The notes beneath the pieces were generated by a model. It had not been told where the DNA came from. It did not search any database and saw nothing but the letters and a program-made list of their open reading frames with translations. A stretch of DNA of 44,364 bases from Lenisia limosa (taxonomy: Eukaryota > Protista > Breviatea), in contig LPNZ01008929.1 in NCBI GenBank assembly GCA_001655205.1, positions 1 through 44,364 on the forward strand. The letters run 5' to 3'. Position numbers and translations under genes: made by a program. Every line of letters starts with the position of its first letter. The first letter of the stretch is position 1. Shown one piece after another: positions 16,500-38,477 of this stretch.

Positions 16500-19400
16500 T
16501 TACCCGTAAATGTACTCAGTAAGTTGTACGGCATCTTGCTCTTCGCCCAAGGCGTCCATTTCCTGGATATCTTCATCCTCTTCGTAGTTGTCCATTTCAT
16601 ATTCATCAAGGTCTTTGTCCATTTCTAAACTATCAGCAGAAATTCAGCCTCACCATCTTGCTTTGGAGGGGCCTTCTCCTTAAAGAAGCCCTTTTTAACA
16701 CCAAAACCTATCAAGGCGGCACCCATCAATCCGCCACCTGTGTCATAAGAGACCGCAGCACAGCAGGCTCACCAATGATGAGATAGTTATTGACTTCGTT
16801 GTCGTCAACCTGTGTGACTTGTTCCACTGCGGGGGCAATAACAGGTGCGGTAAACCGCAACGGGGTGAGAGACAACACATTTTCAATGGGAGGAAACGCA
16901 AAGTCCAGGCTTGCTATCATCACAGTTTCAACCGTCTCAGTGACCTTGACGTGAGAAATGGTGATGGCCTGCCTACATTGATAGTGTCGACGCTGACAAA
17001 AATTGATATTGGCTCAAATGACACAAGGCTCTGAAAATAAAAAGAAATTACATGAGCGAGTGAACTCACCTGCACGTGAAGAGTATCAGCACTGCATACG
17101 ACAATGTTGGCTGAAGATACCGAACACGGAGATATCTGGAGCGATAAGATGAGATGAGTCCCCTACAGTTGCGTTGTATTCATCAAGTGACGGAACTTCA
17201 ATGGTGGCAGTAATACCATTTGACGTGATACCCTTCGGCAAAGCCTGCACTTCGAAACTGGAGTGTTACGAGGGTTCAAGACAAGTTACCTGAGCTGTTG
17301 TGCTGATGAGGGTCCAACGTTGTTGATGTTCCACTCCATGCTGAATGAGCCACCAGTGGTGACAGTGAAGATGGTATCGCCAGTTGAACTGATACCTGCG
17401 AAGAAGCCTTGTTGAGGTATCATCAGCATTGTCACGGATGAAGATGCAATAATCTGAAGAATGAGTGCTATTTCAGGCAAACCTCCGATGTGACATCAAC
17501 AATGTTATTGCTGAGGTCAAGGTCCTGAATTGACATGGTAGCAGCGCCATTGACAGTCCAGTTGCCGACAGACGACAATGAGTTCGTTGGCATCTGGGGG
17601 TGAGCTATAACGGTTGCCTACCAAGCTAAAAATAAGGTACAAACATCCGGGGGTTGAAAAGGTACAGGCAAGAAAATTGGACTTGGCATTGATTGTTGGG
17701 ATTTCGCATCTGAAGAAAACATGTTCCTCGGAAGTTGTCCAGTTCTGTCCAACAGCAGTGGAAATTCCGGCAATAGCAGCCACAGAATTGTTTACCTAAG
17801 TAATAAAGGTCACAAGAAAGCAAACCAAGGAACAGCTTGACGGGACGCTTGTAACTTCATAGGCAAGAGGGATGGCCACTAAATTGTTAATTCACGTTTC
17901 TATAAAACAATAAATACTCAGCAGCATTATCAGCCGTTCAGAATATCCAGTTGTGTCGGAGACATACCAGCGACCTTGACATTGGGTGACGGCGATGGCC
18001 CGTTATTTGTTAGGAGAAATGTGAATGTGGAGGATATTCCTGTGGGTGGCTTGGTAGGGTTGACGCTCGCTGAAACTGACAGGTCTGTTTGGGGGCTTGT
18101 CACTGTGATGTATGTGGTACTGTTGTTATCAGTCTGGATTGGGTCCAGTGCGTAGGTCGATTCACTGTGAACAAGATAAGTCATGTTGGTGTTTTCAGCG
18201 ATTGAAACGTCGAAAGGAGTTTTGATTGAAAACAGAATGGAGGCGATTGTTCCTGATGAGATGATGCCGGTGACGCACGTTATAGTGTCCTGAAGAGTAA
18301 CACAACAAGAAGGCCAACATGATCTGGTAGTTCACAGGTTGATGACGACGAGAAGACTGACAGCGACGACGTGTCCAATCCACCAGGGAATGAGATGAGA
18401 CCTGATGCAGTAAATTCACAACTATCAATTATTATAAGATAACCATCAGAGCCATTGGAGCCAGCCTACTTTCAACATTTTTTGCATCTGCTGGACCTGC
18501 GTTTGCCATGGTGTGAGTAACCTAACAAGTAAGTTGTTCATGAGTATATGATTGATCCACCTCAGTACTACCGCCCGAAGCGGTGGTTGATGGCGAGGCC
18601 TTGAGGCGAATCGTGAGATCGGTGTTGTGCTGAATGGCTGCGGTCACAGTCGCCTCGTTGTTTCTCATTATATTGTCAGCACCATTATGCAGAACTGAGG
18701 CCTACAGTGGTAAATGGTAAACACAATTAAAGTTGGGCTTGGGCATGCTAACCGAAGCTGTAACAGACGTGACTGTCGAGTTGATGTCGCTATTCAGTTT
18801 CCAAGAGAGCACAATCGGGGCCGATTCTCCAATGGCCACGTCACCAACGGAGCAAAGCACGGTATCAGAAGACTGGGTACAGCCCGACGGAAGGGTAATG
18901 ACTGTGACAGGAACTGACGGTTTATTGAAAGTTACAACAACCTGAAGATAAGACATACTGGAGAGGGCATACCGATGAAGCGGTACGTGGGCCCTTGTTG
19001 AAAACCGAGGAGGAGAGGACCAAATAGTGCCCTGCAGCCGTGGCTTTGGGATTGGTGATGCCAAGTGACACGTCACTGGATTGGTCGAACTACAGCGTCA
19101 GACATGAGAAGACACCAACATAGTAAACGCTGGTAATTAAATTTCCAGAGGCAGTGTCGCCGCCGCACGTGGTCGAAACCGTGAACTGCTTCTGGTCAGA
19201 CGTTGTAGTCCCTATTTCAGCCTCGGAGGGCATTGCAATCATGAAGGTGGTGGCAACCTGGGAGTGAGAGCGACAAAAAGGCATACGGATTCTCCGGCAA
19301 GAAGGCCTAGTGATGAGTAAGTGTAGTTGCAAGATGACAATGAACAATCCGCTGCAGGAACGGCACTGGTTACCGAGTCCACAAGAGCGTTGTCGCCAAC

Positions 19401-22400
19401 TAAACCGTCAACGCAACAACCGAAGGACTTCACAAAGCAACCACCCACCGAAGGAGACCACAAAGTTGTCACAAGGCGAAGGGCCGGCGTTTGTGAGAAC
19501 AGCCACAAAACGAAGAGTCGCATCCGGCGCCACATTGGTCCTAAAGGGTTATGCGGATGGCGGACCTACGAAGGGACGGCGGCAGAAAAGATGGACAGCT
19601 CGGACTTCATCATCGATTCAGCAGTGACGCTGGCAATGTTGGGGGTTGACATTTCAACGGTTGTCGTGTTGGCAGAGGCAGTGAGGGTGACGGACGGGAG
19701 GGGCTCAGTCAAGTTGGATGGAATAGCCACAAATCCTCTGTGGTGGTGAGTGTAGCTGTTACAAACCTGATGCTTTTGGATGCTGCTGAGGCAACGGTTC
19801 CAACGTTACACCTGTAAAGTCATTTAAGAACAACAAAAGATGAACAAAAAGTAATCACGCTGACATGATAGAAGTTCCGACGAACGAACAGTCCAGGCCA
19901 ATGGGAAGGCTGAGGTCCAGACCAAGGTCGCTATCCAGAGAAACAGTCACATTATCAGATGAAATGTAGCCCGAATTGCGAACCAAAATCTGAAGGTCAG
20001 ACCCCAAGGAAGGAGGCCTACCGAATATGCCAACTGGCTGCCAACAATTGCCTTGCTGCCCACGGTGATGGAAATCTAAACCGTCAATGCCATGCAAAAC
20101 TGTTTCGCAAGCTCAAAGGGGCAAACCTGGATATCCGTCCTTCTTAAGACTGTGACAGACGGGTAGGCCCCAAGATTGGCAAGGAATTCGGTACCAGCCT
20201 CCGTTGCCTTAGGGGTGAGAAGGATGATAGAGCATACCTTGCTACTGAATGTGATAACACACTCTGGTGTGGACGCTTCAACTTGGTACTGTATGGCCAT
20301 TGTCTTGGACGTGGCGACTGGCATGGACCCGAAGTCACACGTGATGTTCGTGGTGCCTGACAGTAAGAATACCTGGTAGTTCTTACCAGTGATACACTGT
20401 GAGAGACCTCCTGAAACGTAGGAGACATGAGGGGGGATGTCAATGGAGATAACCGATTGACTCGAGGGTGAAGGGCCCAGTTGCTGCATTGTATACATTA
20501 CCACAACGACTGAACCTGCGTTGACAAAGCTTGTCACGTCGGAAGACAATACAAGCGTGGCTTCAGACACCACCGGCAGCGTGACTGTACTCTCCGTCGT
20601 AACGGTGGCAGTATTCGCAGTGGTTGCGATGAACAGCGAGGCCTGCAACAATTATAATCAGAGAATTGCCCTACATTAGTAGCACCAAGTTCTGTGTTCT
20701 TTAAGGAGACTTTAGCATATGATACAATACCACTTTGCAGTGATGGCAACGTGCATCTGAAGTTGCCTAGAGAGTGAGCGGAGTGCGGAGCAAACCTAGG
20801 AACGGTCCACAAGACATTGTCGATCCCGTCGACAGAGCCACAGTGGAGCCACTTGCGGCGGTAATGTCGAGAACCACGTCTTTGGCATCAGAAGGGCCTC
20901 GGCAGAGGACAGATAGCGTCACAATACTCGCTACAAAGTAAACTACAACAAGGCCTTACATGAGCCGTCAACAATGTTGGCGGGGTGTACTGCAGAGTGT
21001 GATAGAACTGACACCTTTGACACGGGTCGGGTTACAGCAGCGGCAGTATGGCTGCACACAGCCGACGATAGTGTCGGTGTCAGAGTGATTGATGCCACTG
21101 AGAGACTGGAAGGGATCTCAAGAACGATGTCTACAAAGTAAGACCCGAAGACTTGCCTACTGTTGGAAACAATGCTCGCGGAGGTCATGTTAGTCAAGTC
21201 GAAGCTCAGATCAGCGGGGGTGCTGACAATGGCAGGAACTGTCACCGGTACGCTAATACTCAGTGTTACGTCTTTTGCCTGTTGCGTTAGCCGCAGAGCC
21301 GCCAAGAATCAGAACATACCATTGTGGGTCCTGAGTTACTCACAGATGCTACCAATCGAACCTGAAGAATGAATCCTCAAACAAGGCTTACCGATTCTCC
21401 ACTGATAAAGCTGGTATCGTTGAGAGAAATAATGGATTGGCTGAGGAACAAGCTGCAGCTGGATAGCAGGTCAAACGTCATGTCAACAACATTGTTGGCC
21501 ACGTAGGCGTCTGTAACACTCGACGTTGAGGCGGAAGCACTGTACGCGATTGCGCCTGTTGGTAAGATCTTTGGCCGGAAGTTGAGCCACTAACCTGGGG
21601 AAGCAGTCTGGTCAATGAGGAACGTCACCGAAAATGTGACCGTGTTGAGAGGGTCAACCAGCCCTGCGAAGGTGGCCACCCCATGTGTTGCATTGGATGA
21701 TGTCAGAATGTCAGGGCTAACTGACATGATAGCAAACACACTCGGGATGTCGAAGATGACTTCAATACCACTGGCCTGGCTTGGACCAGAGTTGCTGACG
21801 TGGAAGCTAGCCACTACGGTCGAGCCAATTGTCAAAGACGTCTGGCTCACAATGTTCAGCTCAAGATCCGCACCGACCACAATATCTAACAAGGCGGCGG
21901 CGCTGTTGTCTGCCAAAACTGGGTCTGTGTCACTGGATGCTGACGATGTCGAAATCGCTAGCGTCGCCCCAGGGTAGCTAATCGGAACCTGGCAGTTAGG
22001 ATTACAGACAGCTTAGATACCTTAATAACGATGACAAACGAGATAGCTTTATTGGCCAAAATCGTGTCGGTGGACCAAGACAGCGTGCAGCTTCCTGTCG
22101 TCAAGTCACTGCCTGAGGGACATCCAACGCCGCGACTCACTCCAGAACTTTCTGTCAGAATACTTACATCCTGGGAGTGAAATGGAGATGTTTGAGCATA
22201 CCTGTGGGATCACGATATCAGACACCGTCGTATCGGCCATGGTTGGCCCAAGATTGGCTACAAAGAGCGAAATCTGAAGGATAATATTCGTAGTATTACA
22301 AACCTCGAGATTCTGGCCAGCCATGACAGTTGTGACCGGTGAGCCAAGGACTGTGGTCTGCATTTCGACGCGAATGTCAGCACCAGTGGCCACACTACAA

Positions 22401-25400
22401 GCCAAGGTGGCGTTGTGGTCGTCGGTGGAGCTGTCAACAGTGCCGCCGCCTGAATGTTAGGAAGGTTGAATCGAACCAACCAATCACGATGTCCGAAGAA
22501 AAGACCAGAGCCGAGCCTTCAGCCGCGTCTGCACTTCCAGAAACCTGGTGTGTTTTATTAATTTCTTGAGAGTTTGGCCTACCTGGAATGTCAAGACTTT
22601 GCCGCGCGCAATTGACGCAATAGTGCACGTGACGGGGTAGAGGTCATCACAAACGGCCCCGGTGGGTGTGGTCACGACGCGACCGGATAGCTCGACTGAG
22701 GTGTGAGACAGGGCAAAGGACTAACCGGCGGACGGCGTGGTGAGCGTGACAGTAATGGGTCCTGCGGTGGCTGGACCAAGGTTGGAGACGTAGCTGTAGG
22801 CCGTTACTACTCTTGCCGGAAGAACGGTCTCAGCTGGGTACGTCGCGATTTGCACAGACATATCGGCTCCCTGAGAGTGAGAATACAGGCACGTGACCGA
22901 CCTTGGACACGCCAATGCTGCCAGAAATGGACGTCTCGTTGTTGAGTGTGGCGCTGGCGTCGACAGAGAACATGGCGTAGCTGCTTGTGGGTGTGAACTT
23001 GACCGAAAGAGAAACGGATGACAGGGGCTTCAGGTCCGGAAGCGGACACGAAGCGAGTGTGCACTCCAGTGTCGGGTGAGGCGGCGTGAGAAGCAGAACC
23101 GTGGTCAACTCGGGAGACTCGCTGACGGTGAGGTTCAGTACCTAGACGTAAGATGGGACTGGAAGGACCAACAGAGTTGAAGTTTGTGGACGGCCCGCTA
23201 TTAAGGACGATGAAGGACATTTCGCCGGTTGATTCGAGGAGGAGCAAGGACGGGGCTACAGGCACCACAAACGATGACAGCACCAATGTGCTTGCAACAG
23301 TGATTGTGGTGACTTGGTACGCATCGTCATTGCTGAAATCGGACTCTACCCCAGAACCGGCCGAGGTTCCTGACACGCTGACATTGGCGGTGATAATGTC
23401 GCCGGCCGGAGTGTCGCTGTCCACTATTACGGAGAGAATGCCGTTTCCTGGTTCATAAGAGCACGGGGGGAGGGGCTTACCGTTAGCGTAGTCAGTTGTA
23501 ACGCTGAGAAGGTCACACGTCACACTAGCGTTGGCGACAGGCGTTTGGTCCTGAAGAGTGCAGCTGGATGACAGCGAGCCAGTAAAGAACAAGGTCGGTG
23601 TGAACGTCAACCGGTTGAGTTTGATGACAACATTGGCTGTAGCGGCCGGGGCCGGGCCTAAATTCGCCACCTGCAAATGAGAAAAGAAGGACCCTCAAGT
23701 CCTACCAAAATGGAGAATGCGGCTGCGTCACCAGCAATAGTCGAAGTTGGGCCGGAGATGACAGTTCTCAAGTTGTAATCCTGCAGTACGTATATGGCCA
23801 GAGGGTCTGAAATGAGAGCACTTGTGTCAGCGACAGAAGCTATGGCGCCTGGGGCAGCAGGGTTGTCCAGAATCTCAACAAAGCCGTAGAGCTTGGTGGT
23901 CAGTTGTCAGCAACAGCCTACCTGCGTTTCAGTAATGGAAGCGGACACGGCAAAAGCCACAGAAACGGTGTATGATGTCACACTTGGCGTAATACCAGGG
24001 TCGACCAAACAGTCCACGTAGTAGGTCAAAAAAGTACATGTTGCTGGGATCGAACTGGATGCCGAGTTGTAGACCAGAGACGTTGGCATTGTTCCATTGG
24101 GGTGGCGGAAGTGCATGCGGTAAATAAACCTGGGGGGGTAAGTTGATCAAGAGCGAACCTACGTATACGAGTCGGAAGGGCCATAGTTTTCAACCGAGCC
24201 AATAAAGACGATGCTGGCCTCCGGAGCAGTGTACATTTGTCCGTCCTTGAACCCAGACGTTGACGCTGTAATGCGGGGGTACTGAACAGTTAACTCCAAC
24301 AAGAGCTTACCAGTTTGTTGGTCCTTGCAAATGATGACGTCATATTACTAGACGAAATGCCAGTCAGATGTGGCGTCCACGTGTAGTCCAGCGTCACATC
24401 CAGACTATGACCGGGCTCAGACGAGGGGTTGGTCAGGACCGTGACGGAGAGGAGGGAGCGTGTTCCGGAATCGATGGTCACGTCACTGGTATAGTGCACA
24501 ATCAGTCCGTTGTCTGTAGGTGTGGTGGTGTAGACGGCGGGGTAGACAGACATGAGCGTGACGGGTTGAAGGGATTCGAATGTTAGAGACACCTCCAACG
24601 ATGTGCAGGTTGAGGGACCCGAGTTAAGGATATTGGCAGTGTACGTCGTTGACTGGATGGTTACATTTGAATGAAGGCTCAAGAAAACACATACGGTAAT
24701 TGCACCTCTCCCACCAATCCTGCAGTGACAGTGGAGCTCCCTGAGATTGAAGAGGACAAGCTGGCTTCGGTCCGAACGGCCAAAGCAAACGTTTTAGACA
24801 CTCCGGTCACACTCTAAGGAGTTTAGACACCCCGGTCACACTCTAAGCCGGTCACACTCTAAGGAGTTTAAACACACAGGTCACACTCTAAGGAGTTTAG
24901 ACACCCCATTGAGCATGTAGTTGCTCCCCTTCAGCCCCATGCCCACCACTCCCGAAGACTCCTGGCCGACAACTTCCGAGGAAATGAAATACACACCGGT
25001 GGTTTTGGAGGACGGAACGATGACAACAAGGTCAACCTCACCAAAAAGACCCTCATACACCAAAGCAGTTGTGCATGTGGTCTCAGCGTCTCCGTCGCCC
25101 TGAACGTGAGTTTTACAGCGTCAAAGGGGGCTTACGTTGATGACGGGAGCGCTGCACGATGACGGTACGGATTTGAAAGTGAGGTCCGTCGGGAGGGTGA
25201 ACACGGCTTGGACGTCATACGCGGCCGACGGTCCCGAGTTGACGAGCGCCATTCTGAATAGTCACCAACACAATAAGGCCGGACCAACCGGACAAGAACG
25301 TAGTCTCCCGATACAGCCTCAGCAGGATCCGGCAGAAGCATGGTGGCTATTATCACAGACTGGGAAACGCTCGTAAACTCGTAAGCCACCACATTATTGG

Positions 25401-28400
25401 AGTCAATGAGGTCCATGGAGGCAGGAATCTGGAGCATAAGACACCATCGTTCCTGCACCTACGTCAGGGTCGGTCGACCAAAACTCAATGAACATTGACA
25501 CCTCATCCTTGTTGCTTGCCGAAGCTTGCACTTGGACAAAGAAGCTTGTTGAGTCTCCCAACGGCATAGCCGTGGTATAAGGACAAACAATTGAATTTCT
25601 GAAGGTGATGAGCAGGCAGTTTGCGACTTACAGATCTTCATCAAAAGTGCATATGTCCGGTGTTGAAGACACGAGAACCAGGGTAGAAGGGACCGAAATC
25701 TGAAGAGTCAATGATGGAAGAAGCCAACAAGAAGGTGCGAAGAAGCGACGGTGTGTGGCCCGTAAGACACAACGTCCACTGTGATGTTGAGAACCTTGGA
25801 AGCCAAAAGAGACCCGTCAGTCTCCAGCCCGTCAATCTGTGGCCTAATGAGACAATAGGTGCACTTACTTGGACATTGGTAATGGCAAGGTCTGCATGAT
25901 AGTTGCCTTTATAAACAAAGACAGCACCGTTGCCAGCCTCATAAATTGTACTATAGAGATAAGCGCTGCAGTCATCGGGGTGATACTTGAACGCTCCGAT
26001 AGCCAGGTCATTGAGTCCTAAAGCGTGACGGCTCACAGCAGCCTACCATCATCATTGAAGTCGCCTGACGCGAGGGACACGCCGAAGCCTGCATATTGGC
26101 AATCGTTTGGACCAGTGATGACTTGGTCCGGCTCGTCAGGATAGATGGGGTCTGTTGAGAGTTCCTGGGCGCGGGAAAAGTAAATGTAAACAGTGCCAGT
26201 TCCGTTGATGCCTAAAACGTGGCATTATTGACTTTGTTGAGGAAAGACTTACCGTTCCAGGGCGCGGCCACGACGGCATCCAAGCGGGAGTCTTGATTCA
26301 TATCGCAAAGCAAGACGGTATGGCCGAACTCGCCGGAATCGTCCTTCATGCCATGCGCGGTCCAGAAGGGGGTAGTTTCCAGTGTGCCAGCTTCTCGTCG
26401 GTAGAGGTGAACAGAACCGCCAGCTGTGAAGGGCTGACCGACAAGCTACATAGTTAGGCATGTGACGGAACTCTAACCAAGTCATCATCGCCATCATCAT
26501 TGACGTCTCCGGAACTCAAGGACCAGCCAAGCGCGCCGCCCGGCACGGCGCCGTCAAGAACCTGTGTGATGGACGGGGATCCTCCAACAACTCCCTGAAT
26601 GTTAGCCTCGAAGAAAATGCAATACAATTATGCTTACAGTGTAGAGCTCAACTCGACCAATAGCGGGTTTCAACTACAGGGTCAGAAGCACAACTTCGTC
26701 CCAACCTTGCCACCCAGGACAGATGGGATCGGAACGTGCATTGGCACGCCGACAGCAAAGTCTGTTGTCAGCTCACTGGGTCGGTTCAGTGCAGCAATTG
26801 AGTGTCCTCTGTAGTAGCTGTGTTCGGCAGTGTTACTTGTCGGCAGGCCAGACTCCCATGACGTACTTGACGACAGTGGCGTTGGGCTGGCTAAGTTCTC
26901 ATCCGGCACTGCGCTGAGGTGTCCAATTCCGCCTGGAGAGTTATGTGGTACTTTTCAGGTGCAGCACCAACCAGCTTTGCAGGAGTAGCCATCAGACCCG
27001 CAGGTTCCGCCAATACCATCTTGGCACCGGGCCTAATGGTAATAAACAAGGGCAAGCAAACCTCGCAACAATCGCCATAGTCATAGTCGCAGCTTTTACT
27101 GTTGTACTTTGTGTCGCAAAGTCCATTGCCAATGACAGAGGAATCAGCGGAGCATCCATCAAGTGAGAAAAGATAATTCCGCATTTTAACGTAACCCATG
27201 ACAGCAACACCCTCCGAGGTCGACGTGAGGTCAGCCATGTCAATCGAGTTCTTTGACGACCAATCATTGGAGTGGTCATTGGAACTGGACGAGACCATTG
27301 CGTTGTATGTCAACACAATCCGCGATCCCAACTGAACAGAATTCTGAGACCGGCCTGATGGTTACTTATAAATCACAGCCTACTTGAGACCTTGTAGTTG
27401 AAAGAGTTGTCATGTGCCACACCAACGAGATAAAACTTTTGAAAGTCCATTCGGAAGGGACCGTTTGTTCCCACAGCGTTCTACAGTGTGACATGCCAAG
27501 ACCCCTACCGTCATGGACGTGTCCGACACTTCCATGAAGGTATTGTCCTCACTGGTCACCGCGATTGTTTTGCTGTTTCGAAACACCACGTTGAAAGGCC
27601 TAGAAATGAGGTACTAAAGGAGCGTACCCTGCAGCGGTATCGGCTTCGTAAATGAGAAAATGCAAGGTCAAATCGGGGCAGTCAGCAGCATCAACGCACT
27701 GGAACCCAAACGCCTAGGTCATAAGTCCGAGTCCCCAACGCTTACGAATTCGTCAATGTAAACGTCGAAGTTGCGCAGTTGCAGCATGTGCCCCCAGAAC
27801 TTTCCCGAGCTTTTCCCAGTGTACTGTGTAAACTTGAACTGCAGACCTGCCATTGGGGTCTGACCAAACTACGAAATGAGACCATGGCAACCCTACATAG
27901 CTTGAAACTTGACCAAGCTTGGCTGGAGCTCCAACAACTAAATCCAGAATGCCGTCCCCATTGACGTCTGCTGGTACAATAGAGCCTGTGCCGTTATCCG
28001 ACCATTCAGATTAATACAATATTCAATATATAAAAAGTATACATATATGCATATGATGTGTTGTATCAGAGTATATTATGTCATAATATATCATATGAGA
28101 TGACTATTTATGAAAAACAAAATGTTGTCATAAATGATTAACGTGGTTCAGTTCTCTTTTTTTTATTTTGCATTGGAAAAATTGCGAAAATAATCTTAAA
28201 TGACCCTTCGAGTTAATTTCGCAGGTTAATTTGTCCACAGTTCTAGTTATGTACTTCTAGATAAGGCAGGAAAAACGGTAATTGTCAACCCCCCTACGGC
28301 CATCAGCCTTGGCAGTAAGAGTTGCGTCCGTTGCCACGCTATTGGGGTAGAGTAGGAAGTACGATGAAAAACCCGTACTAGATAAATAGATGCGAGTTAA

Positions 28401-29757
28401 CCGTTCATCTGGAATGGTAAGGTCATCTTTGGACTCAGAATACCCTACCGATGCTGGAAACAGCGAGGTCAGAGAGGCCGTCGCCGTCAACAAGGTCGGG
28501 TATCTCGCTGATAGTGGTGCCAAAGTGGCAGTTCTCCAGGGCACACTCGCCGGCAATACTAGTCAGCTGAAGAGTCAATGTGAACAGTACGTCATACCAA
28601 GGTTGAAGCAGCGACATCGGAGTAGATGTGAACCGCTCCGTTTCCATCATAAGGAGGTCCACTCGAACCTGGAGTGTAAAAAGCGTAGGCGAGGGAAAAA
28701 CTTACCTTGAACATCTTTATAAGCACCAACAGCAAGATAGTCAGCACCGTCACGCTCGAGAGTTGCCAGTGAGTATCCAAACCTCGTGTCCGAGCCCGGT
28801 ATAGATAGGGTCCATGTGGGCGAAACCATGACGGGATCGATGACAATCTAGAAATGTTACCGGAGTGTTAAGCAACCCACGGGATACTGAGTCATGTCAG
28901 TGACAAGGAACTGCACTGCCAAGCCAGTGGCTGTCACAACAAAATGACTCTCCAACTCCTCTCCTATATGGTCAGTAACCAGTAGCAAATAAAATAAATG
29001 CAAACCAAGGTCAGAGAGGACCGTCAGGCCTTTATAGGGGATTGTGCCTCCAGAAGCCTTGAAAATGGCATCTTTTTCTGACGAAAGAACCACCTGTCAA
29101 TCATCATGGCTCAAAATAGGTACCTTGCTGTTTTGGATACAATTGTAGAAAAAAAGAGAATTCAATTGCCCACTAAATCTTTTCCCAAAGGCCGCCCTTA
29201 CCGTTCCATTAACGTCATCGAAGCGAACATCAATGTAAAACGATTGCCATCTTAATAATGTCAGGACCTTCTTTTAGAATAGGAGAACACACCCTATCAA
29301 GCCTTGGGATAGAAGGAACATATGCTCGGGCTGCGTAGCATGCGTCCGAACAACTTCTTCAAAAGTGCTACAATCCCGCACCACATAGCCGGGTCTAGAA
29401 ATCCATCTAATGCGTAAATGCAGCAGTGCATCCTTGGCACTTACCCAGACTGGGGGCCGCATCGCGAGGCCAAGAGGACAGAGGCCAAAGGCCCTGCCAG
29501 CTGGAGCCTTACTCCCTGGACGTCATTCCGAGGATGCGTTCACAAAGAAAAGATCAATCAAAAAGAAAATATGTCTGCGGTAAAACCCTCACTTACAGTG
29601 TCAAAAGGGGTGAGGGTAAGGGTGCTTTCATTGTGTTCGGTTATGGATAGAGAAGTAACTAGGAAAGTCAGAAAATAGCTTTTCCACACTCGTATTTACC
29701 TTCTACAATGAAGTATATAATAAAAAGCCATGGAATACTCAAGGAAGAGCCAAGCAT
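16500..29757 (-). CDS. ITGA: Giant integrin alpha chain (~3,200-3,400 aa, many tiny introns); symbol is family-level only
   Basis: Signal-like N-terminus MLGSSLSIPWLFIIYFIVE. Seven FG-GAP repeats (RFGYSLA...LAVGAY; DGDGLSDLAVSS; DVNGDGILDLVVGAP; RGHSIA...FAVGVP; DVNDDGDDDLLVGQP; DMNQDSRLDAVVAAP; DFNDDGLNDLAIGA). ~18 Ig-like repeats, TM YLIIGGGLMGAALIGFGV, then KKGFFKEK and an acidic tail ending TEYIYG*. A continuous frame can be built using only GT-AG introns. Confidence 0.93.
16800..25900 (-). other. Array of ~18 DUF11-like Ig beta-sandwich repeats (alpha leg)
   Basis: ADL(S/A)I-type starts and an N-x-G-P motif recur every ~430-560 nt: YGP, NSGP, NSGP, NYGP, NLGP, NSGP, NLGP, NLGP, NSGP, NSGP, CRGP, QLGP, NSGY, NAGP, NKGP, NAGP, NNGP, NVGP. 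Several repeats end in D-x4-NN. Confidence 0.8.
24793..24907. repeat. ~29-bp tandem repeat (about 4 copies, one truncated) spanning an intron 3' end in integrin alpha
   Basis: Unit tttagacac(t/c)ccggtcacactctaaggag. On the minus strand each copy carries cttag|agtgtgacc. Confidence 0.9.
27062..27154 (-). other. LNR (Lin-12/Notch repeat)-like module within the alpha propeller insert
   Basis: CSADSSVIGNGLCDTKYNSKSCDYDYGDCCE fits the C-x-G(D/N)G-x-CD-x3-N-x3-C-x-YDxGDC pattern. Confidence 0.8.
28833..29660 (-). other. N-terminal pre-propeller domain of integrin alpha ending in YPIVIDP
   Basis: Spliced ...FEEVVRTHATQPEHMFLL...IPYKGLTVLSDLGEELESHFVVTATGLAVQFLVTDMTQYP|IVIDP directly precedes FG-GAP 1. 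It resembles the domain ahead of FG-GAP repeats in bacterial surface proteins (recalled pattern, not searched). Confidence 0.6.
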
Positions 29758-30181
29758 GGTAAAGTCGACAGGTAAATGATCAATTCTGAAAAGACGGGAG
29801 CGGTATCCTTCTTGCTTTCATCACTTCGAATGTATTTAAACAATTTAAGACGAATTTTATAATTATCAATTGAAATGTGTAAAATTTAGTGAAAAGGGAA
29901 AGAGAGGAATTTTCTTGACACCAATCTTTCACCCAATTCTCAAATTTTCCCCTTCCGGAACCGCTTGTGATTAATTGGTTTTTAAAGTTCGGTATTTATT
30001 GTTCGAATACAGGTTAAAAAACCCGGATAAAACCCCTCGCTTGATCTATCTTGAAATCATTCCAAAGTTCAATGATATGATTGCATTTCTTTCTCCTTCC
30101 CTGTACCGAATTGTTTACTTTGAGAAGAGGAGTTTATAACGAGTCTTTGCAAAAGCCAGAAGCCACGAGCATATCTTCAGC
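29758..30181. promoter_or_regulatory. Putative bidirectional promoter shared by integrin alpha and beta
   Basis: 424 nt of AT-rich sequence between the alpha ATG (29757, -) and the beta ATG (30182, +). Inferred from geometry only. Confidence 0.65.
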
Positions 30182-33100
30182 ATGGGAGCTTTGCGACTTA
30201 TGTCGCTCATTCTGTTCTTGTTCTCAGTGGCCTTCTTTGTCACAGAAATTGGTGGGTCATGGGAATAAGCACTGTGATTCCAAATGTAAGAGGCTGGTTC
30301 CATGATGTCGTCCACCTCTTTATTCATGAGGTCTTCATTTTGATGTCGTCCGCCACTTTATTCATGAGGTCTTTATTATTGTTGCCTTATTAATTGTAAT
30401 AGGAGCCTCTTGCAGTCTCTACCACCTTGCTGCGTCCCAACAAAGATGTGATGTTTGGTATGTTGGCTTGTTTTCTCTGGTTAGATGGTGGAAATCAAGA
30501 GATTATTTTCACTTCGTAGTGAATAATAAAGGGGAGTGAGCAGGGCATTTATTTGAGAAACTTGAGGCTTTTTATTGGGTGTTAGTTTTTTGCACAAGCT
30601 TTTTTATTGATGGTTGCCCTCACGTACAGTCTCTTGAATCCCGAATGTGGATGGTGTGCCGGTGCAGGCGGCATCTGTGTGACTGGTACCGGAGAAGACT
30701 TCAGAGGACAGCCAGCTGACTGCCCTTCAAACTGGTGAGGGTCTCACTGACAACCTAACAACCAGGGTGTCACCTTCTGGTGGTACTGTGTCGGGTAGTG
30801 AAGTCAGCGATGCCATTATGACACCTACTGAGGTGGCTGTAAAAATCCGAAAGGGAGAAACGGTCAAGGTCAACGTCACTGTGTCGGCAGTTCGCAAGTC
30901 TCTCGACCTGATCTTTGTTGAGGACTTGTCCGACTCTTTTGAGAACGACCTAGTGTTCCTCGCCAATATTGTTGAGGACCCTTCAGCTGCTGGTAAGCCC
31001 GCTGCCCATCCCCAATATCATCTATCCGGGCACCTTTTCGTCCTCTGTTCGTATTCAGCACGGGCGAAGATGACTGCAAAATATTACCTTACCATTTTAG
31101 GCCTTGTGCCGCGAATTGAGACTGAGCTTCTTGACACCACGACTTTCCCAGACCTAACCCTTCGCCTGGGTTTTTCAAGTTTCATTAACAAGGTAGGGAC
31201 TTGTTACGTTGACATTCAAGCCAATGATTCCCTTTGGACGGATTCCCTCGTCTTGCCCCAATTTTGTGTTTGAGAAGCGGGTCAGCTTAGATGGTAAGAC
31301 CAGCAATAACCGTTATTTTTAGTTCCACCTTCTTCTGGATTGCATTGCGATGGGACTGCGGATCCATTTTGTATTCTGAGAAGAGACTTGTTTGCAGCGG
31401 TCACATGTGAAGGATACAACGAACCTTCTGGTGGTATCGATGGTAGGTTAAGGACTCATTGTCACATCCAGGATGTGTGCATTCTCTTCCCGTCTTCAAC
31501 TTTGGTGCTGATGCACGCCGTATTCTCCTCCTCTCAACTGACAGTCTCGTAAGACTACATCAGCGCTTATTGTTTAGTCTGAACTTGCCGGTGACGCTCG
31601 AGCCTATATGGGCATTAGAGAGTCAGAAAGCGGTATGCTGGGCTGATATTTTTTTCTTCTTGCACTGAAACCTTTAGCTGAGGATCATATGTGGGATATC
31701 GTTACTCCAACTGGTATGATGGCGGTGCCTTTTACCAAATAGACGCTATTGTGACAAATGACATTAAACTGGTTGCGGGAGAAGTCTGGCATAGAGAAGA
31801 CATGGCTGAAGATGTTTGGTGTCGAAGAGGAATGCTCACACTGTAGTTCCCATCTCTTTTTAAACTCAAACAACAACTCATGAAATACAATGTGGTTCCT
31901 GTGTTTGCGATTTCAGGTGATGCTGACACTCAAAAGCAGTTCTACCAATGTAAGCCTCCTTCCCCTCTTTCTCAACCCATCCTCAGCCATTGTTGACGAC
32001 GTTCTTGGCTTCGGGTCAGTTCAACAGCTGAGTAAGTCACCATTTGTGCTAACTTCCAGGTTCCGATTCTTCCAATATCTTCGAAGCCATACAGGATGCT
32101 TTTAACGAGGTGTCGACTTCCATTGTTCTCTCGGTTGAGCAGGACGACTTCGATCTTATCAAGGACAACGGAATACAACCGCCATCCTTTTCTGGCGTTC
32201 CAACTGAGGCCACTCCAGGGTACGGCGTTTCATTTGATTTACGAAGTTAGAACACCCACAACGCGCACCTTTGAAGTAAGTCTCCTTTACGACGGCGCAG
32301 AGTGGCCCTCTGATACTGGAACTCAAGTCAAGCTTCAAGCTATGGGATGGGGCAGCACCACCATTAATGTTTGTCCTTTGACATCTTACAATCAGGTGGA
32401 GTTTATCCAGGACTGCGACTGCCCATTCACTTGTCCAAACGATTGTTCATCCCAAGGCTCTTGTGATGTAAGAACCGGATGAGACTGACATATGTAGTGT
32501 GGAAAGTGCACATGCAACGCCCCATTTACGCATTTCACGGTGGACTCGACAATTGAAGAGGACTGCAGTAAGTTAGCCAAAGCCTTTGACCACCAGGTTG
32601 CAACCCCACGCTGCCATGCCCTGGTGATGGGCTCTGTAGCGGACGTGGCGTGTGTGAGTGTGGCCAGTGCTTCTGTTTCGACCCCTTTGGTGTGACGGGG
32701 TCGACGTGTCAATGCCTCACCGACTGCACTGGCGGCTGCGGATATGGCACCTGCATGTGTGGTGTTGACGGCGAATACTGCCAGTGCGACTCGGGGTGGG
32801 TTGACGGTCCCCTTGGTCCCTGTACGGCGGCGACGACTTGTGACCCCGACTGCGGTTCACATGGATCGTGTGTCTACGGAGTCTGTCAATGTAGGAACTT
32901 CTCAGAAATACTGGATTTGCCGACAGTTATCTCGAGGGTACGTTGATGTCTCAGGTGACCCCGGTTATTATGGAGACGAATGTGACTGTCCCGGCGCCAG
33001 CGGACCTGAAGGCTACATTGCAGGAACTGGTACGTTAAGATAGGCTTTTGTTGGTGCTTTATTGGGCTGACCAGATTTCAGGATGCCCGACGCTGGTGGC

Positions 33101-36100
33101 GGGAGCCGACTGTTCAAACAACGGCCACTGCGACTGCGGAGTGGTAGGTCATCTTTGTCAAGCTTATTTGTAGTGTAACTGCACGGCACCCTTCATTGGT
33201 GATGATTGCTCATGTGACACATCTCTCCCTTGCCCCATTGAACCGGTTTCAGGACTCGAGTGCGGTGGCCCGACTATCGGTACGAACGGTCTCATCTTAC
33301 CAGCCAGGCACTTGTGTATGTGGTGAATGCGAATGTCAGTTACCGTATTCGGGGGACAGTTGCGGCTGCAGTGACATTCCATGCCCTGCGTTCTGCAACT
33401 ACCAGGGTACATGTAAGCATGCTTGCAAGCTTACCCCCAGGCACGTGTGGAGAATGCAATTGCGACGCTGGATGGTCTGGTGATGACTGCTCCTGTGACC
33501 TCTCAGCCACTTGCCCTGGTTAGAGGTTTACTACTCTTTTGTGCTCTAGATTGCTTGGCTGTTTTAATGTTTAGGTATTGTGCACGGTACCTGCGGGAGT
33601 TGTGGAGAGTACAACTGTGACCCAGGATACATGGGAGACCTCTGCCAATGCCCCATGGCATGCCCCTACAGGTAGGCTCCATTTGCCCTCCTGATTTGGT
33701 AGCTGCGGAGAAGTTGAAGGTCACGGCGCCTGTGTGACTGACTCTAAAAGTGCTATCCAATGTGGTAAGACTGCAATTGTCTCATGCACCAGGAACATGC
33801 GAATGCTTCGGCGATTGGAGCGGAGAGCAGTGCCAATGCAATGCGACCGCAGTCTGTCCGACCAACTGTCTTGACCCTCATGGTGAGTGTCAGTGTGATG
33901 GAACGTGCAGCTGCAACCCAGGATACGACCATCCTGCTACTGGCGACCAGGACTGCTCATGCTCTCAGCTGAGCTGCATTGGTGGATGTAATGAGGTGGG
34001 AAGGTCACATGCTAATGCTGTAGGGCTCTGGCGGGAATTGTGTTTGTGGCTTGTGCGTGTGTCCGATTGGACTGGAAGGTGACAATTGTGAATGTGATGC
34101 GTCTCTTCAATGCCCCAAAGACAAGTTGGGAGTAACATGCGCTGCCAACGGAGTAAGAGTGAACGTCGTTTTGGTCACACAAGTAGGAATGTGAATGTGG
34201 AGAATGCTCGTGTGCCATTGGATGGTCCGGCCCGGCTTGCAATTGTTCAATTGCTGCCTGTCCGTCTGACTGTTCAGGACAGGGTTAGTCGTCTTTCAAG
34301 CTCACGGACCAGGAACTTGTGTGTGTGGATCGTGCCAATGTGACCCTGGCTTTGCCGGCAGTGACTGTTCCTGTCTTGACTCTGCTGAATGCCCTTCTGT
34401 AGACGGCCTGCCTTGTGCTGGACATGGAAGTTGTGAATGTGGGGTATGTCTTTTCTTCCAAGGTGACCTCCAGACTTGTGTTTGCGACTCTAGTTGGTCC
34501 GGTGCAAGTTGCAACTGCAGCCTTCTACCTTGTCCCATTTCGGACGCAGGCGTTTGCAGTTCTATCGGAACGTGCGACTGGTAAGTTGTCACCTCCTTGT
34601 CACGTTGTAGTGGTAGCTGCAATTGTCCCGCAGGATATCTTGGTAGCGACGATTGCTCATGTTTGGACACTGCTGAGTGCCCTTCAACAGAGAATGGACT
34701 GTGGTTTGTTCCTTTCAAAACTTACAACCCAGTGATGGACATGGCACGTGCAATTGCGAGACGTGTGCGTGTGATGCTGGATGGGGCTCAGCCAATTGCA
34801 GCTGCTCCACCCTGCCTTGCCCCTTAGGCAACTCCTCTATTTGCTCTGGCCATGGCTCGTGTGACTGTGGCGAGTGCAACTGCTCCGATGGATGGACTGA
34901 TGACGACTGTTCCTGTCCCCCTGTCGGCCACCCCCTAGCCTTCTGCCCTGACGACTGCGCGGGACATGGTGGGTGATGAGCCATCTTAACCCCCCAGGAA
35001 CCTGTCTGTGCGGAACGTGTGTCTGTGACCCTGGCTGGCAAGAAAGCAACTGCAAGTTGGTCTATATCGTTATTCTGATTGTTACCCTCAAGCTGTTCAG
35101 CGCTGCCCTGTCCTTCAGACTGCAGCGGCCATGGCACGTGTGATTGTGGCGAGTGCGTCTGTGAAGCTGTAGGCTGTTTTGATATTGACAATCCAGGGCT
35201 ACTCTCTTGACGACTGTTCCTGCAACTCAACCATCCCGGCGGAGGACTGTGGTCTTTTTGGCATTTGGCAATGTGACGTTGGCGCTTATTACCTACTGAT
35301 GTTGTAGCACTGTGAATGCCTTGGTGGCTATACTAATGAAAACTGCACATGTAGCCCTCTGCCGTGCCTTTCTTGTGTTAATGGCACTTGTGAATGTGGC
35401 GAATGTATTGTAAGCCCCCCCCCCCCCNNNNNNNNNNNNNNNNNNNNNNNNNNNNNNNNNNNNNNNNNNNNNNNNNNNNNNNNNNNNNNNNNNNNNNNNN
35501 NNNNNNNNNNNNNNNNNNNNNNNNNNNNNNNNNNNNNNNNNNCTCTGTGACTCGCCTCTACTCAATAACTGTTCTGAAAGTTTGGCCCGTGGTAGCTGCC
35601 AATGTGGCGAGGTTTGTTCCTGTCGTCGTTTCATTTTAGTGTGTTTGTGAAATCGGATGGAGTCTTCCAGATTTTGGCTGCAATTGCTCAACAACGCCAT
35701 GCATCAATAGTTGCAGCGGGAACGGTAGGCCTGTGTTTACTGTTATGTCAAGGCGAATGTGAATGTGGAACCTGTGCCTGCACTGCGCCGTACACTGGTG
35801 AAGACTGTTCTTGCAATTCTGAACTCACATGTCCTAATGATTGTTCCTTGAATGGAGTGGTTTGCTGACTTTGTTTCTCACGTATTAGTGCAAATGTGGC
35901 CTTTGCATCTGTGATCCAGGATGGCAAGGCGCTGACTGTAGTTGCAGCTCAGCCCCTTGCGAAGATGACTGTTCAGGCAATGGTAAGCATCCACCTGCCA
36001 GTTATCTTCAGGCGATTGCGTCTGTGGAGTGTGTCAGTGTTCTGGTACCTTCACTGGTGACAACTGTGCATGTGACTACCTTTTGACTTGTGATGAGTCT

Positions 36101-37997
36101 TGCCTATCGTCTTCCCATGCGTACTGTGATTGTGGAGTGAGTGGCGATACCTTGTACTCCTTATTGTCTAGACGTGCGCTTGTGATTTCGGCTACACCAC
36201 GATTGAGAACAGTACTGAGCCTTGCACCTGGTTTGGCGGTGTGTTTTCTCACTTTTCAGTTCAAGCCAGTCCTGTGTCAATGATTGCTCGGGCTTTGGCG
36301 AATGTGTTTGTGGAGTCTGCCACTGTCAGGAAGGCTACTCGTGGGTTCGTCTCGTAGTTAACTGTTCAGTGAATTGGACTGTTCCTGCAATAAAACTGGT
36401 GGCGAATTGCTCTGTGCCTCCAATTGCTTCGACCATGGAGAATGCGTGGTGGGTGCTGCTTTATCTGTTGATGAAGTAGTGTGGAGAGTGTGTCTGCGAT
36501 CCTGGGTGGCAAGGCTCAGAGCTCTGCGACTGTCCAACTGATCAGCTGGACTGCGGTGGCAATGGAACCTGGGTGTGTGACGAGTGTGTCTGCGATGCCG
36601 GATTCGAAGGCACCACATGTGCCTGTGACCTCAACAAAGAGTGCGTCCTTGGCGACAACGGCCAAGCTTGCTCCGGTAACGGCATCTGCGAATGCGGGCA
36701 TTGTGTGTGCGAGCCAGGCTTTGGCCACCACCCAAACAGGACCAATGAGGACTGCTCATGCTCACAAAGCACGTGCGCATCTCTCTCCATTGATGTGGGC
36801 GCATGCTGTAGATTGACCTTTTAGCTGGAGTGCTCCGGGAACGGAGAGTGTCTTTGTGGCGAATGTCAGTGCAATGAGGGTTTCTCAGCAACCAACCTTC
36901 TCCTGCCGACAGATTGTGGTTGTGACGACTCGCTACTTTGCGACCAGTTTGACTACTGCAACGCTGGTTTGCAATGTTGCAGCTCAACTTACTTTCAGAC
37001 AAGGGACACGGGACCTGTCGCTGCAATCAGTGTGAATGTAGCAGTGCATGGAGTGGCTCCAATTGCGACTGTTCAACAAAGTCTTGTCTCTATGACTGCT
37101 GGGGGCAGGGAACGGTATGCCAGTGTTGCTGCTAACGCTGCAGTGTGTTTGTGGAGAGTGTCAGTGCAACAGCGGCTTCGGTGCGGACCCCTTGACCCCT
37201 GATGCGCCCAACACGTGCTCTTGCGTCCTTGATAAGGAGTGTCAAACTTTGGACATTGTTGACGATGTCTCGGGGTATGACCAAAGACGAGCTGACGGTT
37301 TAGCAACGTGACGTCATTGGTGTGTGGAGGCAAGGGCTCGTGCGTCTGTGGGCGCTGTGATTGTGAGACGGGTTGGGCAGGAGATGTGTGCGACATCTGC
37401 ATTAGCATGGACTGCCAAGAGGCCGCCGTGGTCGACTGCAGAGTTCAGGAGTCTTGCGGCGCATGCACAGTATGTCTTGTTTGCTACTAACATCACTAGA
37501 GTGTGGACTGTTTTTGGTGCTCAGGTGAATGCGGTGACGCTGATTACTGTGAAGACAAGGTACGCGGTAAACTGACCTCACGCCTAGGTTGTGTCGGAAT
37601 GTGTGGCAGAAGCTGTTGTCTCGGAGGAGGCGGTGGTGGTGGTGTCGTTCACGGCAGTACTAGGTTTCCTTGGCCTCGTGTCAGCTGCAGCCATTTTCAA
37701 AGGAATTCAGGTGGGTTCCTGCCAGGCCTAATGTTGTAGACGGCTCGCAACAAGCGACAATGGAACAGGTTCAATGCAGCAATGAAGGAAAAGCAATGGG
37801 ATAACAAGGGTAGGAGGTCCTTTATCGTCAAGTCACTCTTTAGAAAATGTGCTGTATGAGGGTGAAGTCGGAATGACCACCCAAAACCCTCTTTATGGAG
37901 TAGGTTATAACCAAGTCAAATGCACACTGACATTCAGGATGAAGCCTCTGTTGAGGGAGATAATGTCGACACTCTGTCCATTTTGAAAGAAATTTAG
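30182..37997 (+). CDS. ITGB: Giant integrin beta chain (~1,900 aa, ~53 introns); symbol is family-level only
   Basis: Signal peptide MGALRLMSLILFLFSVAFFVTEIG. PSI (SCSLY...RCDVCLLNPECGWC). Beta-I domain DLIFVEDLSDSFENDL, LRLGFSSFINK, ILLLSTD, DFPSLFKL, SDSSNIFEAIQDAF. Hybrid domain, ~34 I-EGF repeats, TM VVVVSFTAVLGFLGLVSAAAIFK, and tail ...QWDNKENVLY...NPLY...LKEI*. One N gap (35428-35542). Confidence 0.96.
30303..30378. repeat. 38-bp tandem duplication inside beta intron 1
   Basis: tgatgtcgtccacctctttattcatgaggtcttcattt followed by tgatgtcgtccgccactttattcatgaggtctttatta. Confidence 0.9.
32410..37400 (+). other. Array of ~34 integrin-type EGF (I-EGF) repeats (beta leg)
   Basis: Hand count of the repeated xC-x(n)-C-x(n)-C-x-GxGxCxCGxCxCxxG(W/Y/F)xGxxC unit after splicing. 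The count may shift slightly because of the gap. Confidence 0.9.
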
Positions 37998-38477
37998 GGA
38001 ATTATCTCAGGTAGTAATATTATGTACATTAGCCTCATGTTATTTTTCTTCTATTTTGATACATCTTTTCGCTTTTCTGGCCACCTTTGGTGAATAAGTT
38101 CAAAAATGAGTACAGTTTCAAGCACTGCCCAAGTGCCCAAGTCGTGTTAGTCAGGGGGGGGGTGAGCAGCTGGCGGTGGCGAGACAGGGTGATCGACCTA
38201 TCCAGACTGTATTCACTTGGTATTCACAGGCGGTGATGATGACAAGTGAACGTGTGATACTGATAAAAGAAGACTAACAAAAACCTTGGTGGGCGACCGG
38301 TTTTTTTTTTTCTCCGGACTTTCTGTTTCTAGGGTGAACACCCCCCCAGATTATTGATACATTAAAAAGTTATCAGGAAAAGCAGGAAAGAGCGAAAGAG
38401 CAAGGAGTAAGTGTGCAGGAAGGTGTATAAGTGTATAAATAACTTGGTAAGGTAGATATTCTTGATAGTCGGTTGAG

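Follow-up and report, generated by a model that had tools for sequence, protein, structure and literature searches.

Integrins are older than animals. In the animal proteins the leg of the alpha chain comprises three domains (thigh, calf-1 and calf-2) and the stalk of the beta chain contains four I-EGF modules, while a head-to-head arrangement of alpha and beta genes is, to our knowledge, not the rule in animal genomes. The most extreme integrin versions known are carried by the breviates. According to the entry given by Kang et al. (bioRxiv 10.1101/2020.04.29.069435, citing Brown et al. 2013), the breviate Pygsuia biforma has an ITGA of 3312 aa containing DUF11 repeats and an ITGB of 1793 aa with 'EGF present 34 times'. 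The ITGA (LenisMan47, 3346 aa) and the ITGB of Lenisia limosa were tabulated in the same study (Tables S1 and S2), in which the former is assigned to the type I ITGA proteins and its leg described as Ig-like. Indeed, a long breviate heterodimer with legs "of nearly equal proportions" has already been proposed by these authors.

Here we describe the L. limosa alpha and beta genes at the genome level. The window, by which we mean the whole 44,364-nt stretch of DNA analysed, lacks long open reading frames throughout and is therefore a eukaryotic, intron-rich locus. Genes were identified by a splice-aware dynamic-programming procedure that relied on codon usage and GT/AG weight matrices alone, and was thus blind to protein domains; a handful of splice sites in the final models were placed manually. 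The minus-strand model, an integrin alpha gene (ITGA), extends from 29757 to 16500 in approximately 84 exons and encodes a protein of around 3323 aa (stop codon 16502-16500). The plus-strand model, an integrin beta gene (ITGB), runs from 30200 to 37997 in 54 exons and encodes about 1908 aa (stop codon 37995-37997). Neither model contains an in-frame stop, and both genes are intact across about 138 exons. The preliminary description of this DNA had placed an adjacent and divergent alpha/beta pair between 16500 and 37997; these coordinates are exactly the ends of the two stop codons, and the divergent layout is borne out by the splice models, in which the start codons are separated by 442 bp. 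This spacer (29758-30199) is presumed to be a bidirectional promoter. The dominant intron class is about 29 nt, with 86 of the 135 introns in the two models measuring 27-32 nt, and the consensus is GTRNG on the donor side with CTRAC, followed by YAG, on the acceptor side. A fibrinogen-like gene neighbours the integrin pair; the animal origin that this neighbour might suggest was considered and rejected.

The ITGA model begins with a predicted signal peptide, MLGSSLSIPWLFIIYFIVEVTS, and an N-terminal domain ahead of the propeller (28806-29757, minus strand), as read from the model translation. These are followed by an FG-GAP beta-propeller (25887-28805), which is matched by Pfam FG-GAP (E=9.2e-8 and 1.2e-4) and contains three cation motifs of the form D-x-N-x-D-G-x-x-D, at window positions 27968, 26507 and 26062, together with a large insert that harbours an LNR-like Cys module. 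The leg (16810-25886) had been estimated to contain some 18 Ig-like repeats. A self-built HMM identified exactly 18 contiguous DUF11-like (Ig-like) repeats of approximately 130 aa each, spanning aa 870-3242, and three repeats outside the seed alignment still score 2e-5 to 2.5e-8. Three ORF pieces of the leg match Pfam DUF11 (PF01345; E=4.1e-8, 3.7e-8 and 1.6e-3), two of which exceed the gathering score (34.0 and 34.1 bits vs 24.6). An N-x-G-P-S motif recurs along the array, and the mutual identity of the repeats is only around 17%. AlphaFold prediction of one repeat from its single sequence returned a pLDDT of 37, too low for confirmation of the fold. The thigh/calf-1/calf-2 type of leg (Pfam Integrin_alpha2 type) gave zero matches on any alpha piece submitted to Pfam. 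The C-terminal region (16500-16809), delineated by frame reading and the model, consists of a TM helix, YLIIGGGLMGAALIGFGV, the membrane-proximal motif KKGFFKEK and an acidic tail; the GFFKR-type element GFGVKKGFFKEK, with its KGFFKE core, immediately follows the helix.

The ITGB model opens with a predicted signal peptide, MSLILFLFSVAFFVTEI, and a putative PSI domain (30200-30734, plus strand) in which CGWC and the motif NPECGWCAGAGGIC are visible, with a weak match to Pfam PSI (E=0.043 on the exon). The hybrid and beta-I domains (30766-32419) were assigned from the splice model, from motifs and from comparison of site residues with Table S2 of Kang et al. The MIDAS is DLSDS (aa 130-134, window position 30923), and the remaining metal-site residues comprise the ADMIDAS ND (137-138), N182, NEPS and the Asp of LSTDS, with LRLGFSSFINK, NEPSGG, ARRILLLSTDS and FPSLFKLKQQLMKYNVVPVFAISGD as further motifs of the domain. 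It should be emphasized, however, that NEPS replaces the DAPE of animals, such that the Glu shared by MIDAS and SyMBS is a Ser in the L. limosa protein, which may thus bind metal and ligand in a non-canonical way. By contrast Pygsuia ITGB, as listed by Kang et al., retains the canonical Glu (204E).

When the beta head was compared with PDB sequences using phmmer nearly all the matches were to integrin beta-8, with the MIDAS aligned, at a weak E value of 0.14. The preliminary description had suggested Pfam counts of FG-GAP, DUF11, I-EGF and Integrin_beta as a check. The first three were matched, but Integrin_beta reached only E=0.058 on one beta head exon, which is below significance because the queries were exon fragments only. 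When the beta head exon was compared with representative proteins, in a library consisting of prokaryote-style ORF calls, the only matches were the ORF of the window itself and three weak fragments, with no full-length homologue from a eukaryote among them. Two other candidates were set aside, one (P0004, locus L003) as an unrelated, prokaryote-like locus and the other (P0003, locus L004) as a 1-kb fragment from another sample.

The beta stalk (32420-37412, aa 478-1767) is an array of tandem I-EGF modules of the CxCxxCxC type, each of about 38 aa. The proposed number of repeats, around 34, proved to be precise, as the motif count (27 strict plus seven variant copies) and the number of matches to a self-built HMM are both 34. 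The stalk contains 272 Cys residues, beta pieces are matched by the Pfam families EGF_2, I-EGF_1 and EGF_integrin, and the best PDB matches of a stalk exon are the I-EGF modules of integrin beta-1 and beta-3 (E=1e-4). The gene terminates (37413-37997) with a Cys-rich tail domain and a single TM helix, VVVVSFTAVLGFLGLVSAAAIF. The cytoplasmic tail carries RFNAAMKE, NVLY and the NPxY motif NPLY.

Within the region encoding the stalk the assembly contains a gap of 115 N (35428-35542). In two other assemblies, a Logan contig (run X1) and the ENA contig ERZ3820729 NODE_75 (locus L001), the latter 100% identical to the window on both gap flanks, the Ns are replaced by 62 letters. The fill supplies the 3' end of an intron, completing a 32-nt sequence (GTAAGC, a poly-C run and CTTAG) in a region where the introns are 28-32 nt, and then translates as CDPGFSGSTCECDTML, which continues the reading frame of the flanking I-EGF modules. 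The possibility that the beta gene is broken at the gap was rejected, as both assemblies provide the same in-frame fill.

Judged on their sequences, the genes in the window are almost certainly those of the L. limosa ITGA and ITGB described by Kang et al. The beta site residues 130D, 132S, 134S, 137N, 138D and 182N are those of Table S2, in numbering as well as in type; thus, counted from the modelled 5' end, the MIDAS Asp falls at position 130, as in the tabulated protein. The residue types of NEPS agree with the tabulated ITGB, for which RFNAAMKE is also listed as a tail motif. On the alpha side the modelled and published sizes (around 3323 vs 3346 aa) differ by less than 0.7%, and propeller motifs at 697 and 821 in the model lie within five residues of those at [701] and [826] in LenisMan47. 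NPxY and GFFKR-type motifs are common to the published entries and the window pair. There are, however, differences. In the beta model the SyMBS Asn is separated from NEPS by 25 more residues than in the table, and the InterPro descriptions reported by Kang et al., 'Ig fold like 11 repeats' and 'EGF 12 times, EGF like 4', contrast with the 18 and 34 modules counted here. As LenisMan47 is a Trinity transcript of 3346 aa, the alpha repeats are not skipped in the mRNA, which, for this chain, argues against the scenario that cDNA would lack most of the repeats.

The preliminary description had regarded the architecture as the novel part of this locus. This view fails, as Kang et al. list both L. 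limosa proteins and a Pygsuia ITGB with 34 EGF modules; the giant proteins and the idea of matched leg lengths are already published, and the giant pair is a confirmation rather than a discovery. What is new is the head-to-head linkage through a 442-bp divergent spacer common to both genes, the exact module counts for L. limosa, the genome-level models of both chains with their dominant class of introns of about 29 nt, and the correction of the gap, which leaves the beta gene unbroken.

We consider it reasonably probable that this divergent breviate locus encodes both chains of one giant integrin, which pair with each other through long legs whose lengths are constrained. The short shared spacer, acting as a bidirectional promoter, would keep the two chains co-expressed, and by analogy with animal integrins the chains would associate head-to-head and TM-to-TM. 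Each leg may measure approximately 70-100 nm, an estimate that uses per-module rises borrowed from other proteins and may be in error by 25-30%. Such a receptor would exceed an animal integrin in height several-fold and might make contact with substrate, prey or epibiotic bacteria beyond a thick surface coat; signalling would rely on talin-type binding to the NPLY motif of the tail. That the legs may be of similar length is a reasonable back-of-the-envelope estimate, and agrees with published opinion. The near-equal sizes of the chains in the two breviates (3312 and 1793 aa in Pygsuia, according to its published entry, vs 3346 and about 1908 aa in Lenisia), and an EGF count of 34 in both, suggest that the lengths may be under constraint. 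As Pygsuia has chains of the same size while the alpha repeats are only distantly similar to one another, both expansions are old; they may have taken place in step, as the preliminary description suggested.

It could be argued that the subunits are indeed giant but that the similarity in leg length is coincidental, the legs being flexible spacers without register, or that each chain partners other integrin paralogs. The length estimate rests solely on assumed per-domain rises, and the genome contains a confirmed beta paralog on another contig (L002, 11 kb, truncated) with no alpha gene within 5 kb upstream; linkage is thus not universal among the integrin genes here. The 442-bp head-to-head linkage of the window pair, however, is how co-regulated partners would be expected to look, and the near identity of the sizes between the two genera, despite the low identity of the alpha repeats, argues for retained length. 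We view coincidence, or pairing with other partners, as rather unlikely, although it is the most substantial of the alternatives.

It is improbable that the chief role of the proteins is that of a tall coat or tether on the cell surface, one that spaces epibiotic bacteria or prey for instance, rather than that of a signalling integrin gated by ligand through a bent-to-extended transition. The Ser in place of the MIDAS/SyMBS Glu is consistent with such a role, as is the absence of the LLxxxHDRKE alpha-interacting motif from breviate ITGB (Kang et al., bioRxiv 10.1101/2020.04.29.069435), and 34 plus 18 modules would be hard to fit into the compact bent conformation of animal integrins. In contrast, conservation of GFFKE, the NPLY tail and most metal-site residues, and the retention of most of the intracellular adhesome by breviates (Kang et al.), point to a signalling receptor. 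Finally, the sole RNA contig that places on the locus (170 nt, run X2, colinear with the genome) retains a predicted 31-nt intron and a small number of splice sites were chosen manually, but it is very improbable that the models are artefacts or pseudogenes, with repeat arrays over-joined by the gene finder or broken at the gap, when some 138 exons are free of stops, a domain-blind procedure nevertheless recovers regular arrays of 34 eight-Cys modules and 18 repeats, the gap fill is identical and in frame in two other assemblies, and a published transcript encodes an alpha chain of the expected length.

Returning to the reading of a co-expressed giant heterodimer, it is tempting to speculate that selection holds both legs to a common length, as a molecular ruler, and that the head-to-head promoter balances the stoichiometry of the chains. 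We offer this tentatively, and consider it possible rather than probable, because 34 I-EGF modules are reported for Pygsuia and counted here, and the alpha sizes are near-identical, while the alpha repeats have diverged to such an extent. The agreement with Pygsuia nevertheless makes the length-constraint hypothesis concrete enough for testing and, if the ruler is real, breviate integrins would lend themselves naturally to studies of how the reach and activation mechanics of integrins are set by the length of the legs.

Set against described integrins, the L. limosa pair has a familiar plan built on an unusual scale. In common with animal integrins such as alphaIIb-beta3 and alpha5-beta1, the alpha chain has an FG-GAP propeller with Ca-binding motifs, a single-pass TM helix and a GFFKR-type motif, and the beta chain has hybrid and beta-I domains, the latter bearing a DxSxS MIDAS, CxCxxCxC I-EGF modules, a TM helix and NPxY, in addition to the putative PSI domain. 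The legs, however, contain 18 DUF11-type modules instead of three domains in alpha, and 34 I-EGF modules instead of four in beta. The preliminary description assumed that such linkage had precedents in unicellular holozoans, but a literature search uncovered no account of holozoan alpha and beta genes in head-to-head orientation. In Thecamonas trahens and Capsaspora owczarzaki the cysteine-rich stalk motif of ITGB is greatly expanded, but less than here, and the ITGA of Thecamonas is also long (2114 aa), but its leg consists of two Ig-like repeats and Laminin_G3, with no DUF11 array (Kang et al.). Kang et al. give no genomic arrangement or linkage for the Lenisia genes, to which the present work adds the head-to-head linkage and exon structure. 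The closest counterpart is Pygsuia, of another breviate genus and represented by transcriptome data only, which bears on any comparison of linkage; its published entry describes the same giant architecture as that reported here, with chains of near-equal size, the same number of EGF modules, GFFKR and NPxY.

Two intact, adjacent and divergent genes with the sequence hallmarks of integrin alpha and beta chains are present in the window. The alpha gene runs on the minus strand from 29757 to 16500 and encodes, in the final model, ~3323 amino acids; the beta gene occupies 30200 to 37997 of the plus strand, with 54 exons encoding 1908 amino acids. Their start codons lie on opposite strands with 442 bp between them, in agreement with the adjacent, divergent pair of the preliminary description. 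As the window lacks long open reading frames and contains seven runs of N, it derives from a draft eukaryotic assembly. Genes were modelled by dynamic programming, in which the only inputs were codon log-odds and GT/AG weight matrices, and the models were adjusted by hand at three places. At the alpha C-terminus a false 27-nt intron had cut out VKKGFFKEK, which was put back; in the beta tail a 29-nt intron at 37711-37739 brings back TARNKRQWNRFNAAMKEKQWDNK; and the beta 5' exons were set on the plus strand to 30200-30251, 30416-30457 and 30599-30734. Downstream of beta, a plus-strand gene at 38478-40252 resembles, by motifs only, a short-chain dehydrogenase/reductase (VITGATDGIGLGFA ... YAGSKAY), and a rough model of a minus-strand neighbour at 9631-14336 gives a secreted-looking protein of ~570 amino acids with a signal peptide.

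Within the beta gene the assembly has a gap of 115 N at 35428-35542. When contigs of the DNA run X1 were placed over 32000-37999, one crossed this gap with 62 letters instead, as does ENA contig ERZ3820729 NODE_75 (L001), which is 100% identical to window 20647-41398. The exon before the gap ends ...NGTCECGECI and is followed by a 32-nt intron (GTAAGC, a poly-C run, CTTAG), after which the next exon reads CDPGFSGSTCECDTMLLCDSPLL... and carries the I-EGF pattern on perfectly. Thus, the beta gene is unbroken and in frame over the gap, which the intronic poly-C run probably caused. It was the 28-32 nt introns seen at the filled gap that led to clean gene-finder models. In place of a second gap of 95 N, at 41011-41105, L001 has 47 letters (positions 20312-20358).

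Ultra-short spliceosomal introns are the dominant class in both integrin genes (window 16500-37997), which contain approximately one intron per 110-120 nt of coding sequence. Introns of 27-32 nt make up 39 of 53 in beta and 47 of 82 in alpha (86/135 together; mode 29 nt). They have GTRNG in common at the 5' end, and a branch site resembling CTRAC precedes YAG by 6-10 nt. One alpha intron, at 27967-28298 on the minus strand, is long (330 nt) and AT-rich with a NAGNAG acceptor (CCAGCAG), the upstream AG of which restores the full DVNGDGILD cation motif. In rough models the introns of neighbouring genes are apparently longer and more varied. Support from the RNA run X2 consists of one 170-nt contig (window 36390-36559, depth ~4), which is colinear with the genome and keeps the predicted 31-nt beta intron at 36449-36479, inside which lies an in-frame stop; this contig may represent pre-mRNA, intron retention or DNA carry-over.

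The preliminary description had put the repeats at ~18 in alpha and ~34 in beta, figures that proved exact when counted with HMMs. In alpha, a self-built HMM, seeded on the 15 repeats having an N-x-G-P/Y motif, delineated 18 contiguous units at residues 870-3242; the three units absent from the seed scored E=2e-5 to 2.5e-8, and mean pairwise identity among the repeats is 17%. Three alpha pieces matched Pfam DUF11 (E=4.1e-8, 3.7e-8 and 1.6e-3), and minus-strand stop-to-stop pieces matched FG-GAP (E=9.2e-8 and 1.2e-4). An insert in the alpha propeller, at window ~26900-27400 (residues ~530-570), has an LNR-like Cys motif, NGLCDTKYNSKSCDYDYGDCCEARCQDG.

The beta stalk comprises 34 contiguous modules of ~38 amino acids each (residues 478-1767, 272 Cys; HMM); of its CxCxxCxC motifs, 27 are strict and 7 are variants. 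Plus-strand pieces matched Pfam EGF_2, I-EGF_1 and EGF_integrin, and a stalk exon has its best PDB matches in integrin beta-1 and beta-3, over their I-EGF region (E=1e-4). Frame reading of the 5' end revealed CGWC, a motif of the PSI type, as well as the MIDAS sequence DLSDS, and the 3' end encodes a transmembrane helix and, after it, an NPLY-containing tail. The statistics for the head domains are those of exon fragments. An integrin beta paralog, with its head at 5615-5878, occurs on the 10983-nt contig ERZ3820729 NODE_1514 (L002) of the same metagenome assembly as L001, at lower coverage (24 vs 34). Its MIDAS reads DFSRS, its MIDAS exon is ~52% identical, and its introns are much longer; no alpha cation motif was found within 5 kb upstream of this beta on the truncated contig.

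These genes very probably constitute the Lenisia limosa ITGA/ITGB locus, judging from their agreement with published proteins. The sequencing runs in which the window occurs are from 2016, a poly-A metatranscriptome among them. The reported ITGB has MIDAS 130D/132S/134S, ADMIDAS 137N/138D, SyMBS 182N and 215N-216E-217P-218S, and the tail RFNAAMKE (Kang et al., bioRxiv 10.1101/2020.04.29.069435). All of these agree with the model, except that the NEPS tetrad, although present, lies 25 residues further along. As the model is longer by that amount between the SyMBS Asn and NEPS, the small exon at 31221-31293 is uncertain. The Trinity transcript LenisMan47 encodes an ITGA of 3346 residues (Kang et al.), compared with 3323 in the model; its GFFKR corresponds to GFFKE in the model, and its propeller motifs at 701 and 826 to those at 697 and 821. 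Since the published length is transcript-derived, the alpha repeats are not skipped in the mRNA. The giant alpha/beta gene pair of the preliminary description is confirmed in detail.

With respect to how the pair might work, the 442-bp spacer could drive co-expression of both chains, which would associate as a heterodimer through contacts at the heads and the membrane. If, in line with integrin ectodomain structures in general, each Ig-like module adds ~4-5 nm and each I-EGF module ~2.5-3 nm, the alpha leg would extend ~70-90 nm and the beta leg ~85-100 nm, equal within error. The length-matched legs of the preliminary description are a plausible interpretation, albeit not a new one.

Indeed, the giant architecture, which had been put forward as novel, is already published together with the matched-leg idea, for the same proteins (Kang et al.). 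The text of that study makes no mention of genomic linkage of ITGA and ITGB, and a literature search found no report of head-to-head integrin genes in holozoans. The additions made here are modest, comprising the linkage, exact repeat counts, gene structure and gap repair. In animal integrins the Glu of DAPEGG is common to MIDAS and SyMBS, whereas in the present beta chain it is replaced by Ser (NEPSGG, window ~31400-31440, residues ~240-243), listed as 218S in Table S2 of Kang et al.; Pygsuia ITGB retains the Glu. This Ser, and the reported lack of the alpha-interacting motif in breviate ITGB (Kang et al.), are cautions on how the pair might work. Pygsuia biforma has a 3312-residue ITGA with DUF11 repeats and a 1793-residue ITGB with 'EGF present 34 times' (Kang et al.). 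The reported EGF count equals that of the beta chain described here and the alpha size is nearly equal, which, despite old and diverged repeats, lends support to a constraint on leg length.
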